DNA of 64,000 nucleotides. It comes from Auanema rhodensis. Taxonomy: Eukaryota > Animalia > Nematoda. This document shows, piece by piece, positions 10,719 through 24,800 of the stretch (its first letter is position 1; every line of letters begins with the position of its first letter). The stretch lies in contig OZ059899.1 of NCBI GenBank assembly GCA_964057225.1, positions 12,462,001 to 12,526,000 of the forward strand, given 5' to 3'. Position numbers and translations under genes: made by a program. A model generated the notes under the pieces. The model worked only from the letters and a program-made list of their open reading frames with translations. It had not been told where the DNA came from and made no database searches.

Positions 10719-12616
10719 CTAAAGGAAAAAAGTCAAACAGAGTGAAATATCCTGGTTGAGTCTATCCAGGCGTTTGTGCAACAGAACGAAGGGAATATAG
10801 AACGTGTTTATGTCATCTGCAGAACAAAAGTTTTGTCAGGTGAACGTGTGAATGCTTATTATAGCGAGGCAATTCACTTCTGACTCTAGCTAAAATGAAC
10901 AGATGAATGGTTGGAGTATTGAAAGAGTAATTTTAGATGCGCCAGTGATCCATAAGATAAGTGGCTATGATATAGGTTCAATTTCAGGCAACGTTGATGT
11001 ATTTCCTGATTTACTGGAGTTAAATATAAAAGTTATTAGAACCTATTAAACCTAGATTCCAATCGAAATGAAAGCACTGGGCTGAGCAAGAATAGATCAA
11101 CTTCAATGATTGGTGTCGTAGTGTCGGCAAAATTAAAAAAAAGCTGTCAGCAGCAAATGAGAGGATGGACAACTCGATAAAGAAAACTAAAGCAACCATA
11201 ATAAGTGAGTGCATGATACAGATATATTATTTTCAGAGCAAAGTTAGCCATAATTCTTGGGGAAGGCTCGATATAAGTCGGACCAGCTCATGTGTTCACA
11301 ATATAGAAGGAAGTAAGTAAAGAAAAAGTACAAGTAATATGTACTCCAGAATTCAGTCATAGTAACAAAATATGGCAACAATCAAAGAATACCGTCTTAT
11401 GTCGATATGTCGTCATAAAGCATTATCATACATTGAATCCATGATTTCCAAAGTTGCAGAGATTGTTATTCGAGGCTTGCTACCCGTGGTGATAAGAAAA
11501 AAGAGAAGAAGCTGCAGAGAGAAAGATATCTCAACGATCTCTCACTTTGGCACTTATTGAAAGCTGTCCGAAGTACAATTCACAGAGAAAGAATGATCAT
11601 CTTCAGGAAAATCAGTGATGACCAGTAGGATAGTCGAGGGAACATAGGGTCTACGAGACATTCTGACGACAAAGAAAGCCATCACTATAATTGAAATTGA
11701 ATTGTGCCTCTCAGTCGGCTAATCAGGGCTCAGGCACAAAATCGCATAACAGAAAAACGCAAAAAAGAAGAAAACGGCGGCAATATCGCAAACGGAGCTC
11801 AGGCTTTTCGCCGTTTCAGTACGCTCGAAATCATTCATTCGAGGGAGGCATGCTGGAACAGACTAAAACTAGCAACAAAAAAATAAAATCATGCTGAAAG
11901 CGCCCAAAATAATGTCTGGTAACAACCAGCATGCCCATGCCATACACTTCCTTGTAAAGTCGTGTTAAAAACGTTGAGTGTTGTGAGAAATCCGTTATTC
12001 AAATGTCGATTGCTCGGCGGAATTTAGAAATACCTAGTTTGACATTCTCACACGCACGATTCCATTCTCTAACCTATATTAAAAACAAATCCACTAATCA
12101 TATATCAATAAAATGATGTAAGATAGATTGACTGAAAATCAATTGCCTTGTGAGTGCCTCTTTTGCCCTTTCTTTCCTTTGAAATTTTAGTGAATAAGCT
12201 TAATTCTGTCACTATTTTGTTACGTAGCTTCTTACTTTTAGCTATTATCAAACTTACTTGACTTATTTTTAGTTATTAAATATTATTATTACTTTTTTTG
12301 GGATAATAATTAAACTTTTTATCTCTATCATTCAATGGTAATTTATGCTTATTTTCTTGGCTTCATCACTGATTAAACCAGCAGTCCATTATAATTTTTC
12401 CGCTGCAATTGGCAGGAATTAAAACGTAATACTCCTATTCTAGTCAGTTTTCTTGAGGAAAATTTTGTTTTCGATGAATTCGAAGTCAAATGCGGTCGTT
12501 ACTACAGAACCGATGCTGTCACATCAGAAATACCCTTGTTTTTATTCCGGAAATTTGAATTTAGCATTAATATCTTTGGTATAAGCATCAGAAACAAGTA
12601 ATATAATTGTCAAAGT

Positions 12617-12622
12617 TTTATT
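12617..12622 (-). terminator. Candidate polyadenylation signal of the SERTA/IER-like gene
   Basis: AATAAA on the minus strand ~555 nt after the stop at 13177. Confidence 0.45.
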
Positions 12623-13019
12623 AAATCATTACACATTAAATAAATAAAGGCAAGACTACAAAAATATGCTCTCGTTGCTACGGGAATAAAAAATGAACAA
12701 TTACCAGCCAGAACTGTGATGATCACACTAGGTCCAAAAAAGTCGACAAGACTAAGTTGAACTTCGATTGAGGTCAGTTAAATTACGGGACACGAGGTAC
12801 TCCGTAACGTAAAAACCACAATCAGAGAACAAAAGCATTATGAAAATCATTACAAAAAAAAGGTAGAGATCAACTTATTTTTACACGAATTATTAATTTT
12901 AGGATTTTTGAGTGCCTTATAAATTGAGCAAAGTAACACATATATGAACAAAGCTCGACAAAAACGAGAAACAAGAAAATAATTTTTAAATTGTACATAG
13001 AATAGTCGCATAGAATTGT

Positions 13020-13102
13020 GTTGTTCAGTGAAATCGTTCGAACTAACCCGTTTTCATGATTCTTTAAGAAATAAATAAATTCGAACTACCTCACTAAGCA
13101 AC
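13020..13102 (-). ncRNA. Candidate let-7-family pre-miRNA hairpin (or structured 3'UTR element)
   Basis: Minus-strand fold-back pairing GUUGCUUAGUGAGGUAGUUCGAA with UUCGAACGAUUUCACUGAACAAC. The 5' arm begins UGAGGUAG at 13093. G-U pairs make the minus strand fold better than the plus strand. Confidence 0.45.
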
Positions 13103-13176
13103 GAACGGACTACAAGCTACGGACCCGTATCAACTGCAATGATTGGGTATTGGTTAAAGTAATAAGTTACAGCGCA

Positions 13177-14626
13177 TCACAGTTTTAAACGTTTCTGATG
13201 AGTAACATCGGCGCTGGCTTCGTATGGAAACTGTAATTTTCGGACTGAGCATTTCGGGCGTAATAGGGATATGGCTCTACCTCACTACTCTTCCGCTTCT
13301 TTGGCGAAACTATTGGATTAATGGCATCGAGATCAGTCAAATTTTCTGAATGAGGTGGCGACATTACATCATCCGTTGATGATTTTTCTATCAACGGCGT
13401 CTGAAATAACGTGACAATGTGATAAAGTTTTACAAATGAGTCACTTACGTAAGTTTTCATTTCGGAATAGCTGTTGTTATTAAGGGAGAGGAAAAGCTGA
13501 TCACTGGGTTCTGCTCGAACGGGTTGCAGCGGGGAAGTGTTCCCGACGTCGCATAGTGTGGAAAGGGCGGACAACGGTTCCAATTCATACGACGTCATCG
13601 AAAGATCATATGTACTAAAAAACGCAATAAACACAAACACAGAAAAACAAAGATAGTACCTGTCGAAGCCATGTGTTGGAACTGTTGGAAGCGGAAGTGA
13701 AGATTCCGGACTTCCTCCCTCGGTGGCGGACTCAGAAATAGTGGAATAGCAATCATATATACTCAACCGGGGATCACTATCATCAAGACTATCAAGAGGT
13801 GATTTGATTTCGGCACGACTTTCAGCACCATCCCGACCTAGAATGTCGAATTCAACCTTAGTTATACTGACTGACTAATGTTACCTGTGAGGAACGATGA
13901 TCCAATCATGTAATCGTGATACTGATTAGAATCTATACACCCAGACGACAACCAACAATCATTCTAATGCAAGCAAATATTAATTCATCACTATGACTGA
14001 TATCTACCTTAGGTATATCATGATCATCCAGTAATTCCATATTGATATCACTGTCATCAGCTTCACAAAGAGAATTGTCTGATGGATCCACATCATCCAA
14101 ATACTGAAACAGGACGACGTAAAGCCATGGCAAGATCTTGTTTCAAAATATTTTAAGACCATGATCACAAAACTTTCACAATACAACGACTCTTACGAAC
14201 CCTAACATAATGCGCACTAGCATCATCGTTAAAATGAAGTTGATTCAAATTACAATCATAACTAGATGTTATTAATGGATTTGATGAAGACTGAAATAAC
14301 TCAACATATCTCCCATTTACCACAATTTGTTTATGTGAACTTCAAATACTATACCTCTTTCCCCTTATACTCTCTTGTATCTTCCTCCACTACCTTTTCC
14401 CCATGAGATTTCAGGAGGTCCGATACAAAGTTTTTGATAAGCACTCTAGAACACGGTACAAATAAAATATTTATTCATCAACTTTCATCTCAAACCTTTT
14501 CCTCATCGCACTACCTCCACAACCAGCTCGACGTTTTTCCATTTTGTCATTACATTTATCAATAGCAATATTACATAAGTGACCAAAGACTTCCTCAGTG
14601 AGCTGATCAAGAGTATACGAATCCAT
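13177..14626 (-). CDS. 334-aa acidic, largely disordered protein with N-terminal SERTA/IER-like helical motif and C-terminal basic NLS-like clusters
   Basis: Nine phase-consistent exons: 14626-14496, 14445-14355, 14290-14201, 14103-14008, 13963-13885, 13837-13660, 13614-13449, 13400-13281, 13230-13177 (1005 nt). Starts MDSYTLDQLTEEVFGHLCNIAIDKCNDKMEKRRAGCGGSAMRKRVLIKNFVSDLL and ends SPKKRKSSEFPYEASADVTHQKRLKL. The family assignment is by eye only. Confidence 0.8.
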
Positions 14627-17600
14627 TCCTATGCCTACCTAAAATGATAACGATGCATAATATCGGATATAAAAATTCAAAACAGGTGATACAAGAAACA
14701 GAGGAAAGAAAGTGCTTCTATTACTGGACGACCTTCAAACTTCAGTCGGAATGGCACAAAAGCAACACGTTTTCACTCGTCTTAGAAAGTGACAATGAGA
14801 AATAAGAATTCTAACAAAAATTACAAGACCTTTTTAGAAAAATTTGGTTGGGATGTGTATATAATAGACTGAGAAATTTATTTATATTTATTTTTGCGTT
14901 CAAAGCTGCTGGAAAAGCGCGGAGTAAGCCATAGGAACCGTATATTTCTCAAGAAAATATAGTTTTATGAAAATTTAAAAGCTAGTCCTGGTGTTTATTT
15001 GATTTAAAAAATAGAATGCACTTAGAATATGAAGTTGCTCATTATATGATTTCATATGAACATTCTATATCAAAAAATGTGCAGGTTTTTCTAAGAATCA
15101 ATTCTTTTCTAAAAGTATCGATTCTATTTCGATCTACAAAGGCTGATTCATAGCGAAAATGCTTCACCAAATACAGTGGACATGCTGGACAAGAACTGGG
15201 CCCCTTCTCTAATCTGGAGAATAATCCGAACAAGTAAGATGGAAATGAATTTCAAATTCAAGATGGCGCCCAGTGTTTTTGAGGAGCGGTAGATTAGCGA
15301 TGGAGCGCATAAACGACACTTGTTTAGATTTCGCAGGCGACATTCGGCCGTGTGTATGTGTGGTTGGCTGGCGGTGATGATGGTGTGGTGGACCCGACTT
15401 GGCTGCTGCTGGCTAAGAGAGGCTGTGGGGTTGTGGGCTGTTGCTGTGTGCGTCTATAATCGCCGACGACGACGACTAGAAGGGAAAAGAGAAAGAGATG
15501 AAATGAGATGGGGGAAAGCAAAAGAGAGAGAGAGAAGGGACAGAAACAACCCCAACGAGGTTTGCATGGACTAGATAACAATGAAGTACAAAGAGAAGCA
15601 GAGAACCTTAGATAAAGAGCACTCAAAATGGAGAATGTTAGACAGTCAGACACAACGACACACAGCCCTCACAGACCACAGAATGTTCGGGGCAAGGCAC
15701 TGCTGGCTGCGATATTGGTGTATCTGTCGATGAGGCCGGGGAGAGGAAGGCTGTTGTGCGCGCTCGCGCCAAATAATGTCAGAGTCAGACAAGAAAACAC
15801 AACGTGTATGCATTGTGTGTCTGCCCTATCGATTCTTTTTAGTTTTCGGGCCGTTTGAGAGAGAACAGGTATAGTGGAGAGACATGGACACACACAGACT
15901 GACAGATGGGCGAACAGACACATAGCCAATTGTGACGCTCTCTAATCTATACGCTCTATCAGAGGCGTCTTACCATCTGGCAATCTCTCAGTTTTTCAAA
16001 CTCTCTATCTATTTTATTCTCCGCTCAGTCCAGCTAGCACCCCCCCCCCTTTTTTCCCTCTGATGTGGAGTGGCTGACTGGGCTGAATGGTTGCTGCAAT
16101 GAAGGGAGGGGGGAAAGCCTAGAGACTTAAGAGTGTGGAACAAGGCGGGTTAGCCGTAGGTCAAATGAAGATAAATACAGCACGACAATCGCAGTCCTCC
16201 GATTTCGTTTCGACTCTTCTGTTAGAGGCCCGTGATTCATAGATAACGTGATTGCACCAAAGTTCTGTTTACCTTCCTATGTCGTCTAGGGACAGAACAA
16301 AGTGATAGAAGCATTTTTTTGTTCAAAATAACTGTAAAATGAAAATTTACCGAGTGTTAGTCATAACATGTACGTAAAAAATAAAACTATGGCAGAAAAG
16401 TAGTTTTCTTTTGAGCTTTCTATTGTTTCGTGTCATTTAAGAAATAATTTTAACAATTGAAATTAATCCGCTTTTCTCCTCATTTAATAACGAATGAAAC
16501 TAATCTAAAATATATCTGACACAGTATAGTGGAGTAGATTACCGTGAAAAGAGAGAGAGAGATCAGGATTTAAGGAAGGGACTTCGTATCTCCTTCATCG
16601 TATCCAGACCAATAAGATCAGTGCGATGGTGTTAGAGGTTCCTTATATAGACGAAACCATTTATTTATTTTAGATAAATGTTTTCTAATGAATCAGAAAA
16701 CTACTAAGCGTAGGCAAAGGTCTGAGTGTTCTTTATGAATGTCTGTATGATTATGCATTAAGGTGTGATGATAAGGAAACATGACGCAATTGATTAAACA
16801 AAGTGAAAATAACTAGCGGTTCTGATTAATTTTATACTAAATGAAATCTATATATAGTACATTATATATCGGTGAACAAATCTTGAACTAGCTTGTAGTT
16901 TCCTTCAGTCGTTATTTTGGACTCTAACCTCATTTGTAGGGAAACGAAATTTTGAGCCCAAGATGAAGAAAGAGGAACATATATTTATGTATTACTGTTT
17001 TATGCTGAATTTAAGATATAATCTGAGTACGGCTGATTAGAAATGAGTAAATGTATCACGAATATAGAATTTTCTCATAGCCTAAGCATTATACTGGGAG
17101 AGTTCCGGATTGAAGCATGATACTCTGAATGAAGTTCCGTATATTAGTGATTGAAGTATATGGATCAGAAGGATACACATACATCTACTCAGCTTGTTAA
17201 GGCTAAGTTAAAAAGTCCAGAAAGCCTATGAACAAATGGAAATGAATGGAAAAAGTCAGTTACAGCTGGTAGTACGAGAGTCTCAAATGACAAGTAGTAA
17301 TATGAGTTAACATGTAGTTGAATAAGAATCAAGATTTTAATTTAACAAAATTCTGAAGAATGTTAGACTGAAGCTTCTTGAAAACATATAAGAAGAAGAG
17401 CAGACGATGTTATAGAAAAAGTGGAGGAGCTAGAACTAAAAAAAAGCCCTGACTGACCAACGAAAGAGAAAATTTGACGAACGAAAAACAACGAGATACA
17501 ACCGTGCATTCTGTGTGTGAAAAAAACTAAATAAAGTTGTTCACGTAATCTACGTGAAATTAGAATACGCATAGACCTCACATGATGATTAGTTATGAAT

Positions 17601-21800: not shown

Positions 21801-24800
21801 TTCATATATTCGATTGCGCTTTCATTATTCTAAGCCAACTTTATTTTTATTTTTTCTTCAAATTATGTTATATTATATAAAAATATGTTTGTGCTGTTGA
21901 TTATTTCAAAAATACGATTTCGAACGAACAAGTTGAAATTCGGTCAACTGAAATAATTCTCATCTTTCTTGCTGTGCATGGATTCTCTTCAGTTCCAAAG
22001 CCAAAAATTGTCCCATCAAATGCTATATATATAATTCGTGTTTCTTCTGACATCTTGACATATTTTCTATTTGGTCAGTCTTCTGCTCGAAAAGATGAGA
22101 AAGCAACAAGCGGTTGATACAAAGCCTTAAACGTTCAAGATGTTGAATATTCCTTCAGCTGATCTTCCTACTACTTCTTGCCTGAATGCTCTACTACTTA
22201 TCCTGATTCATCTACCAGCAATAGTCCTAATCGTTACTTTTGCATTGTGATTACGCCTTCTAACTATATCTTTACTACTCAGTTGTATGTGTTAGATTAG
22301 CTGATAGAGAGGGTTCTAAGACAAATAAATTTGAAGATACATCAGGTTTCATTATCTGCTTATACCATAGCATGTAATAAACATCCGTTGTCATTCCAAT
22401 CAGCTTCTCTTTTATTGTATTTCCTTCTAGCTAAATATATATATATGGTTATATGTTTCTACCAGACGAACATGTCTATCTCATACACATTCATATATTG
22501 TGACGTCAAACAAATACCATAAGCTTCATGATTTATATAATGAAATTTCAAATAAACAAGTTAATGAAATGATTAAAATCCTCAGAAGTTCCTTCTTTAT
22601 TCATGTAATCTCATCAGCTATATCCTCTTTGAAATTGGATTTCAATTTCTAACTTAGTAAATCATTCACGACTATATATTCCTCCATTTTCGTTATAGTT
22701 AAGATATGTGTCTGTTGTTTTCAAAAAAAATTTTTTCTTTGAATATGATGAATTATGACTATCTTTCATCTAATATTATTCCTGTTTGAGCATATCATAT
22801 ATAGCTGTCTGCCAGATTCTTCTTCCGGTAATGCGTAACCCTCTCTTTTCACTTTTACGTCATTTGTACAAGATGCTTGTCGCTCATGTCGTGAAATATT
22901 TCACTTCATATTTGATGACATAATCAAACGTTAAAGCATTTGGCACTTATAGAAATGAAAAAGAAGAAGAAGCCATTATTAGATCAGAACCCAAATCTAC
23001 ACCTTTAGAAGATAAGAGAGATAGAGTAGATGTAAGAGACAAGATGAACAGATTCTACGCATACATCAATGTTCGATGCGCAAGTGCCAGAAGTGTGCGA
23101 CCCGCCCAAACACCTTTTCATATACACAAGATTTTTCTCATATGGACTTAAACATGTTTAATCTAAAAGATTAAAACAGATTCGGCGATTACAAAATCAT
23201 AACGAAGAGAGAGAGGGCAAGTTCAGTTTTACAGCATCTTCATGCTGGAGAACAGTTTGTTGCAACACAGCGGTTGTGTCATCCTTCTCCGTATCGTCTT
23301 TAACTTCATTTCTTGAATACAGTGATTTTTCAGATGTTTTACACATGTTTCTCTGTAATTTCCTATTTATTTTCCTTGTTTGATTGATAAGCAACCCTAA
23401 ATTAATTTAACTATATCATATCATGCTGAATCCTCCCCAACTTCATCTCATCGCATCAGTGCTCAACTCGTCTAATTTGAACTTATTTGAGATATTTTCC
23501 AATATCTTTGATTTACAAAAATTTTATTATATAAAAACTTTATATTTTTCTATTTCTTTATTCTGTTATAATCATCTTATTAGAGAATTTTACTATTGTT
23601 CATGTTCATCGACTTTTGAAGCTTGAAAGCTTCTCCTCGTTAACTTTGCTGAAATTTATCTTAAAATCTCTCCAGCAATTCCTCGTAATCGTAAAAATTC
23701 TTTAAAATTAGTCAACTGGAAATTCGATATCCGTACTTTTGGCTTTTTTTCTGTTCATTCACTAAATGTTTCAATGGAACATTGAATAACCTGTGAATAT
23801 GCATGAATCAAACCCTCACAAACATTTGATTTAAATACGAATTGATGACTACACATTCTATGAAAAGGTCAAGCATTCTATCACCTTTATCTCCACTTCT
23901 TCTTTCTCTCCATCATGATCACGAGCATATTCTCCGTTGAAACCTTACAGTCGAAATAAGCAGTGTTAAATCTTTTCACTTGTAACCCACAACCTGTCTT
24001 CAATCATATTTTCTATTTACCAACCAATTGAAAAAAAACGAATACCATCTTGTTTTTGTTGTTGTTCAACTTCCAAACAGATTCACAGCATCTAACAGGA
24101 TCTTAAATATCTTGGTAGACTTTTAGCTTTCATTTCTCACATTCAAGAGCTGATGATATTGCTTTGACCTGTCATCTTTTAAAAAATTGCTATTGTTCAC
24201 ACTTACTTGTGTATATCTATCTGGGTTTTCGTATATGAGTAGGTTGAAATATCATTTCTGGATACCATGCAATATTATAAACTTGCATCCAGTTTTTTCC
24301 TTGTACATGTTGAAGAATTTCTATTTACTTTTGATAATCCTTTTAAGTTTATGGATTCTTTGCCATATAAGAATATACGCTTTCAAGTATAAAGATCTTC
24401 TTTGTAGCCTTGGGCAATAAAAAGGGTAAGACGCCAACAAGACGTAAAAAACCAAAGGATAAGAAGAGAGTTTAAAAGAAGAAGAGAAAAAGATGTGGTT
24501 AGTGAAAATGGATAAGAGAGGACGATTGAGGAAGAAAGCGAATGGTGAAAACGAGAAAGATAATACAAGATGAATATGTTAGATGCAGGTAGAAGAAGGG
24601 AAGAAGGACGTTGCATCAGATCTATTGAGGCGCGATCGCCGTCGCGGGACCTGATTTCGATTGCCTCCTCCCCCACCTCAAAAGACCTTTTAATCCAGGG
24701 TCCTATCCTCTTTAGGATAGTTGTCAAACGGTTATTCTATAGCCTATTCGTTTTAGCAGTTTCCAGATTTGTCCTTTTTGTCAAGAACCGCTAGAGCTGA

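Follow-up and report, generated by a model that had tools for sequence, protein, structure and literature searches.

Members of the nematode let-7 family (let-7, miR-48, miR-84, and miR-241; Rfam RF00027 and RF00811) come from stable hairpins of about 80 nt in which U plus the seed GAGGUAG opens the 5′ arm. The seed of a miRNA is normally the most conserved part of its hairpin. Drosha is also known to cleave hairpins within mRNAs that do not give rise to a functional miRNA, e.g., in the DGCR8 mRNA, the known examples being from vertebrates and flies and lying mostly in the 5′UTR or coding sequence. Other structured elements reside in the 3′UTR itself. These include structured AU-rich elements (AREs), such as the TNF-alpha ARE hairpin, with class II AREs carrying the UUAUUUAUU nonamer, and the sites of double-stranded RNA (dsRNA)-binding proteins, i.e., Staufen-binding stems and ADAR substrates.

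Here we analyze a hairpin encoded by the minus strand at positions 13020 to 13102 of a 64,000-nt stretch of Auanema rhodensis DNA (the whole of which is referred to as the window). A preliminary description had put this hairpin forward as a new let-7-family miRNA embedded in the 3′UTR of a SERTA/IER-like gene. The locus has in common with the let-7 family the U plus GAGGUAG at the opening of the 5′ arm and a stable hairpin of about 80 nt. It differs from the family in that the seed is lost or absent in the sister hairpin of Auanema sp. JU1783, the 3′ half matches no member, no covariance-model similarity is detectable, and the let-7-like strand is the predicted passenger; in addition, the hairpin is part of a 3′UTR instead of an intron or a transcript of its own. 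With Drosha-cleaved mRNA hairpins it shares a pri-miRNA shape within an mRNA and a constraint on the structure, not on a small-RNA sequence, cleavage here being hypothetical, but unlike these the A. rhodensis hairpin has an AU-rich element within the upper stem. As in class II and structured AREs, there are two conserved copies of UUAUUUAUU in the UTR, one of them in a weak helix that possibly controls its accessibility, and the host resembles the gene of a labile regulator; described AREs, however, have no counterpart of the lower helix of the A. rhodensis element, which is long (about 20 bp), stable, and covarying. The likeness to Staufen and ADAR sites, at the level of predicted structure alone, consists of a long, near-perfect 3′UTR duplex with a lower half constrained in pairing and not in sequence, whereas the upper half of the Auanema hairpin is constrained in sequence. 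The data reported below indicate that, most likely, this hairpin serves the control of the mRNA as a structured element and is not a new let-7 gene.

Host gene and position of the hairpin

The main features of the locus, in window positions, are the following.

13177 to 14626, minus strand: host coding region, with the ATG at 14626 and about 8 exons; orthologous to the gene of a 333-aa Auanema sp. JU1783 protein
13177 to 13179, minus strand: true stop codon (TGA), after the last intron, placed by comparison with P0001 and the JU1783 gene (L012)
12600 to 13176, minus strand: host 3′UTR, with AATAAA at 12622-12617; 80 to 100% identical to JU1783
13020 to 13102, minus strand: whole stem-loop in the 3′UTR, with 31 pairs and a 12-nt apical loop; RNAalifold finds the helix with JU1783

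The best relative of the host protein is the 333-aa protein of JU1783, from whose gene a last intron of 50 nt (13280-13231) could be deduced; the conserved C terminus ends in HQKRLKL. With TGA 13179-13177 as the true stop, the hairpin begins 75 nt downstream, and the interval of 75 to 155 nt after the stop given in the preliminary description is right. The protein family is nematode-wide, being represented in Caenorhabditis, Heterorhabditis, and two further orthologues (L019 and L022) that, from accession and sequences, we take to be strongylids. A Pfam search of the host protein, made like the other protein searches with the individual exons, matched no family. ESM Atlas, on the other hand, gave a score of 0.90 to a SERTAD2 cluster, and there is a resemblance to the SERTA motif in the N terminus, whose conservation reaches 77% in nematode fragments from metagenomes. 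The designation of the host as SERTA/IER-like can thus be retained as a lead only, i.e., the SERTA label is plausible yet unproven, and the gene may, judging from these resemblances, be an unrecognized nematode SERTA/taranis homologue. Immediately before the start codon region, some 60 nt (14731-14790, minus strand) are 100% identical to JU1783 and could represent a 5′UTR exon or a promoter element.

Structure and strand specificity of the hairpin

Folding bore out the minus-strand fold-back at 13020-13102, with 31 predicted pairs. The 89-nt fold of 13017-13105 (minus strand) has a free energy of −27.7 kcal/mol, compared to −13.9 ± 2.9 kcal/mol for dinucleotide shuffles (z −4.8). From the base upward, the structure consists of a basal helix of 4 pairs, a lower helix of 10, a middle helix of 9 that includes the TTCGAA palindrome, and two weak A-U/G-U helices of 4 pairs each, topped by the 12-nt loop; between basal junction and apical loop, the 5′ arm is 35 nt long. 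This is the architecture expected of a pri-miRNA, namely, a stable hairpin of about three helical turns that folds better than shuffled sequence (31 pairs, z −4.8). The individual pairings proposed earlier were all reproduced: on the minus strand, AGUGAGGUAGUUCGAA (16 nt) pairs with UUCGAACGAUUUCACU at 15 of 16 positions, two of them G-U; the lower stem GUUGCUU/GAACAAC adds 6 of 7 possible pairs; and a weak upper stem of A-U and G-U pairs follows above the 16-position stem.

Comparison of a 141-nt minus-strand segment with shuffles, suggested in the preliminary description as a check, gave −37.9 kcal/mol and a z score of −3.1, with 0 of 200 shuffles as good. The plus strand of the same 141 nt is less favored (−27.2 kcal/mol, z −1.7) because the G-U pairs turn into A-C mismatches, as had been anticipated. 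The hairpin structure is specific to the mRNA strand.

Searches of the whole genome for paralogues, by DNA similarity, by a 22-mer pattern at 3 mismatches, and with a covariance model built from the hairpin, returned its own site alone. The hairpin is single-copy and therefore neither a repeat nor a MITE. Two 3-mismatch matches to the 22-mer pattern were rejected as paralogues, having no fold or being without the seed.

Folds of this stability are frequent: about 40 distinct 90-nt places reach −28 kcal/mol or better in the 64-kb window (both strands, 128 kb of strand sequence). Since stable 90-nt folds are so common, a few let-7-seeded hairpins per genome are to be expected by chance. The hairpin fold exceeds chance; the let-7 seed match by itself does not. 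The most stable single hairpin of the window is a G+C-rich one at 24591-24680 (minus strand, −40.4 kcal/mol, z −3.0), which is strand-specific (plus strand, −28.1 kcal/mol, z 0.0).

Conservation in Auanema sp. JU1783

A hairpin is present at equal UTR offset in JU1783 (−27.4 kcal/mol, z −5.3; antisense, −15 kcal/mol), where the helix has 25 uninterrupted pairs. The parts of the A. rhodensis hairpin differ in their conservation, as follows.

13087 to 13096, minus strand: fast-evolving lower helix, 5′ arm (positions 11 to 20 of the 13017-13105 fold); 5 of 10 nt differ from JU1783
13027 to 13036, minus strand: lower helix, 3′ arm (positions 70 to 79 of the fold); 3 of 10 nt differ from JU1783
13066 to 13086, minus strand: upper 5′ arm of 21 nt, invariant between the two species; holds UUAUUUAUU at 13078-13070
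13036 to 13054, minus strand: upper 3′ arm of 19 nt, likewise invariant; holds ACGGGU at 13051-13046
13056 to 13067, minus strand: apical loop, the center of which is the sole variable part of the upper hairpin
13086 to 13093, minus strand: UGAGGUAG octamer, consisting of the let-7 seed preceded by U, within the lower helix (5′ arm); not conserved in JU1783

The upper arms are identical at 40 of 40 positions (21 + 19 nt), with variation at the loop center. Nowhere in the UTR is divergence greater than in the lower helix, where 8 of the 20 nt are substituted, in every case without loss of pairing. Four of the changes are one-sided and proceed via wobble pairs, and one is a compensatory swap of U-A to A-U, the partner of which lies in the 3′ arm (13027-13036). 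The same arm carries the change by which the A·G mismatch of the A. rhodensis lower helix is a G-U pair in JU1783. Counted over the named structure, variation is one-sided in 5 pairs and compensatory in 1. Cells in register are paired in 98.4% of cases versus 29 to 55% with the partners slid by 1 to 3 columns, and RNAalifold, which is independent of the input structure, recovers the same helix with 30 pairs, none of them broken. In a simulation in which 8 random substitutions were distributed over the 20 lower-stem positions, with the same numbers per arm, at least 9 of the 10 lower-stem pairs survived in 0.7% of the trials (P about 0.007) and all 10 in 0.04%. These figures pertain to a comparison of two species, with a covariation that comprises one compensatory pair plus wobble-mediated changes, and are compatible with either gain or loss of the seed. 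Conservation in related species had been proposed as a further check on the miRNA, and in JU1783 it held for the hairpin and its upper arms and failed for the seed.

Protein searches, an exact-ORF look-up, and two metagenome scans for a third Auanema species yielded only JU1783 and distant orthologues, the latter being those of Caenorhabditis, the two presumptive strongylids, a metagenome fragment with 5′ exons only, and a 42%-identical metagenome locus. No comparable hairpin was found in the 3′UTRs of these distant orthologues; in those of the Caenorhabditis orthologues, L019, and L022, both sliding-window folding and the covariance model were negative. As the hairpin was not found beyond the Auanema orthologues, the element is young.

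The let-7 seed and similarity to miRNA families

The U plus GAGGUAG reported for 13093-13086 (minus strand) is indeed present in the sequence. The aligned JU1783 columns read AGAAAUGG in place of UGAGGUAG, with 4 of 8 positions different. The hairpin of this related species does not retain the seed, the region of which has the lowest conservation in a UTR that is elsewhere highly conserved. In A. rhodensis, two G's of the seed are engaged in G-U wobbles (A-U in JU1783), and a seed A is in the sole mismatch of the 16-position stem, so that the seed looks like tolerated drift.

The geometry of the hairpin permits 5p starts at fold positions 13 to 17. According to the Drosha measuring rules, the basal junction favors a cut near positions 16-17, while the apical rule allows 13 to 17, according to whether the weak terminal helix forms; use of the rules against the let-7 register was considered and abandoned. 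Of the two ends of the proposed duplex, the one bearing the 5′ end of the 3p strand (G-U, G-U, U-A, U·U) is much weaker than that bearing the 5′ end of the 5p strand. The strand-asymmetry rule states that the weaker duplex end favors loading of the strand whose 5′ end lies there, and the let-7-like 5p strand would therefore be the predicted passenger.

Rfam models gave 0 matches at the gathering score in the whole 64-kb window and, at E ≤ 10, no let-7, mir-84, mir-48, or mir-241 match in the segment 12800-13400. The matches obtained at the site are generic long-hairpin noise, such as the plant families MIR8562 and MIR2646, with 12 to 15 bits versus cut-offs of 211 to 245. The hairpin has similarity neither to the let-7-family covariance models nor to any curated Rfam cis-regulatory or small-RNA family. 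Positive controls from the same genome scored 44.6 bits (mir-1), 36.3 bits (lin-4), and 33.3 bits (the mir-84 model on another locus, L007; see below). With the seed absent in JU1783, no covariance-model match, and a 5p strand that is the predicted passenger, the central proposal of a new let-7-family miRNA was not upheld.

let-7 and other miRNA sequences in the genome

The assembly amounts to 180.9 Mb in 112 contigs, and the germline genome of Auanema rhodense has been reported as 180 Mb (10.64898/2026.08.27.747507). Whole-genome pattern searches with the canonical let-7 21/22-mer gave no match at up to 3 mismatches. Three near matches (L002, L003, and L010) were discarded as canonical let-7, not being hairpins. 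A genome-wide RF00027 search scored 57 of about 18,000 candidates and is not informative on let-7. An exact miR-1 sequence is located at C7:15076884-15076904; the genome also has a lin-4 hairpin (C5:8323477), the mature sequence of which is changed at 3 positions toward its 3′ end. Either let-7 is strongly diverged in A. rhodensis, or it is in missing sequence.

A let-7-family-like hairpin was found on the plus strand at L007:1016-1086 (G000:C7:8684015-8684085). It starts with UGAGGUAGUUUUAAAGUUAUGG, folds at −32.2 kcal/mol (z −5.3), and matches the Rfam mir-84 model with 33 bits (E 8e-5), below the gathering score; we consider it a convincing let-7-family hairpin. Another candidate, L008 near C7:7052368, was rejected as a let-7-like hairpin since it has no fold (z +0.46).

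Conservation and motifs of the host 3′UTR

The 3′UTR, of about 560 nt, is 87% identical to its JU1783 counterpart (L012:7432-7975) over about 370 nt and 80 to 100% identical per 40-nt segment as far as the poly(A) signal. Introns of the host gene, in contrast, are about 45 to 55% identical and essentially unalignable, the whole UTR being therefore strongly constrained. A 40-nt UTR block at 12665-12626 has no change relative to JU1783. This conservation suggests that post-transcriptional control of the host gene is unusually heavy.

Two copies of the UUAUUUAUU AU-rich nonamer occur in the UTR, at 13078-13070 and 12647-12639, both of them in JU1783 as well (2 observed versus 0.04 expected from shuffles, P 0.002). 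The UTR hence contains, in conserved form, the nonamer that defines class II AU-rich elements. The copy in the upper stem of the hairpin is weakly paired, through A-U and G-U, to the conserved stretch containing ACGGGU.

UACGGGU is found at 13129-13123 (minus strand), 48 nt after the stop. A UACGGG core is present in the 3′UTR of every orthologue fetched (L012, L013, L014, L015, L019, and L022, i.e., Auanema, Caenorhabditis, and the two presumptive strongylids) and may, from this distribution, be an old conserved site. Both the ACGGGU of the hairpin (13051-13046) and this UACGGGU are complementary to the miR-51/100 seed. About 20 nt 3′ of the hairpin, UGUACAAUU at 12997-12989 (minus strand) is conserved in JU1783, and a second match starts at 12635; the motif fits the FBF/PUF-type consensus UGURHHAUW.

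Discussion

We think that the hairpin is probably a lineage-specific (Auanema) stem-loop that is maintained by selection in the 3′UTR of the SERTA-like mRNA and acts in cis on the host transcript. The grounds for this are that the helix forms on the mRNA strand only, that it occupies the same offset in JU1783 despite introns of about 50% identity, that its lower half keeps pairing, and that its upper arms are invariant and carry UUAUUUAUU base paired to the ACGGGU stretch. The preliminary description had allowed for a structured UTR element as a fallback, and it is this part of it that the pairing-preserving substitutions in a strongly conserved UTR support. Drift in a helix constrained in pairing only is most likely the source of the let-7 seed.

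A hairpin with no function, shared by the two species through common descent alone, would be compatible with the small number of species compared (two), with the self-palindromic TTCGAA that supplies part of the pairing from both arms, and with the frequency of comparably stable folds in the window. The species are far apart, however, as judged by the approximately 50% identity of the host introns; the lower stem has changed at 8 of 20 positions with no pair broken (P about 0.007); and the structure is strand-specific in both species, all of which makes such an origin quite improbable. It is somewhat easier to envisage, if still unlikely, that the hairpin is a pri-miRNA-like Drosha/Pasha substrate outside the let-7 family, the cropping of which would destroy the host mRNA. 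A small RNA would in that case come from the invariant 3p arm, starting near GGUUAGUUCGAAC, or from the upper 5p arm, and the lower helix would be the basal stem. The 35 nt of the 5′ arm between basal junction and loop are pri-miRNA-like, and the combination of invariant arms, a variable loop center, and a covarying basal helix fits a miRNA precursor. The first 13 nt of the 3p product delineated in the preliminary description are identical in JU1783, and loading of the 3p strand would be favored by the weaker duplex end. Yet the whole UTR is equally conserved, so that the invariant arms are not specific evidence of a miRNA, and the upper stem is weak, rich in A-U and G-U pairs, and made of the AU-rich element; the Rfam miRNA families, moreover, give generic long-hairpin noise only. 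To our knowledge, no canonical miRNA has been described from within a nematode 3′UTR.

The let-7 interpretation can be recast as a young, species-specific family member with mature sequence UGAGGUAGUUCGAAUUUAUUUA from 13093-13072 and a seed born by drift in a pre-existing hairpin. What speaks for it is an exact U plus GAGGUAG at a geometrically possible 5p start of a stable hairpin in which a 2-nt overhang can be drawn, together with the state of the family elsewhere in the genome: no match to the canonical let-7 22-mer was obtained with as many as 3 mismatches allowed, and the 3′ part of lin-4 is diverged, so that the heterochronic miRNAs look unusually diverged here. Even so, the seed is absent in JU1783 though the flanking UTR is 87% identical, 3 of the 7 seed bases are in wobble pairs or a mismatch, and there is no similarity to a let-7-family model of the kind seen in the mir-84-like L007. 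Duplex asymmetry would moreover make the 5p strand the passenger, and chance seed matches are to be expected, such hairpins being common. In our estimation a let-7-family miRNA at this locus is very improbable, even in this young form.

If the hairpin is, as we favor, a selected cis-acting stem-loop, its helix of roughly 31 bp could be recognized as double-stranded RNA, the lower helix serving as the platform. Alternatively, the helix might gate the access of single-strand binders to the weak upper-stem sequences, the candidates being tandem CCCH zinc-finger ARE-binding proteins or a miRNA. Either role would set the stability or the translation of the host mRNA, which is apparently tightly regulated. 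The let-7 octamer would then be a by-product of neutral drift where the helix constrains only pairing.

A seed match plus a fold-back is insufficient to call a let-7 paralogue, and here a single sister-species comparison split the selected structure from the unselected seed. Were it true that drift has just made a let-7 seed and that Drosha crops the hairpin, a newborn let-7-family miRNA would have been caught at birth, in a genome in which the canonical let-7 was not found and with its production coupled to the destruction of a SERTA-like regulator mRNA. The failure to find canonical let-7 while miR-1 is exact may be of more interest to specialists than the hairpin. What the locus offers is a new, unannotated structured element in the exceptionally conserved 3′UTR of a nematode-wide gene, and the AU-rich element paired in its upper stem would make it a tractable case of RNA structure gating access to AREs or miRNA sites in nematodes.
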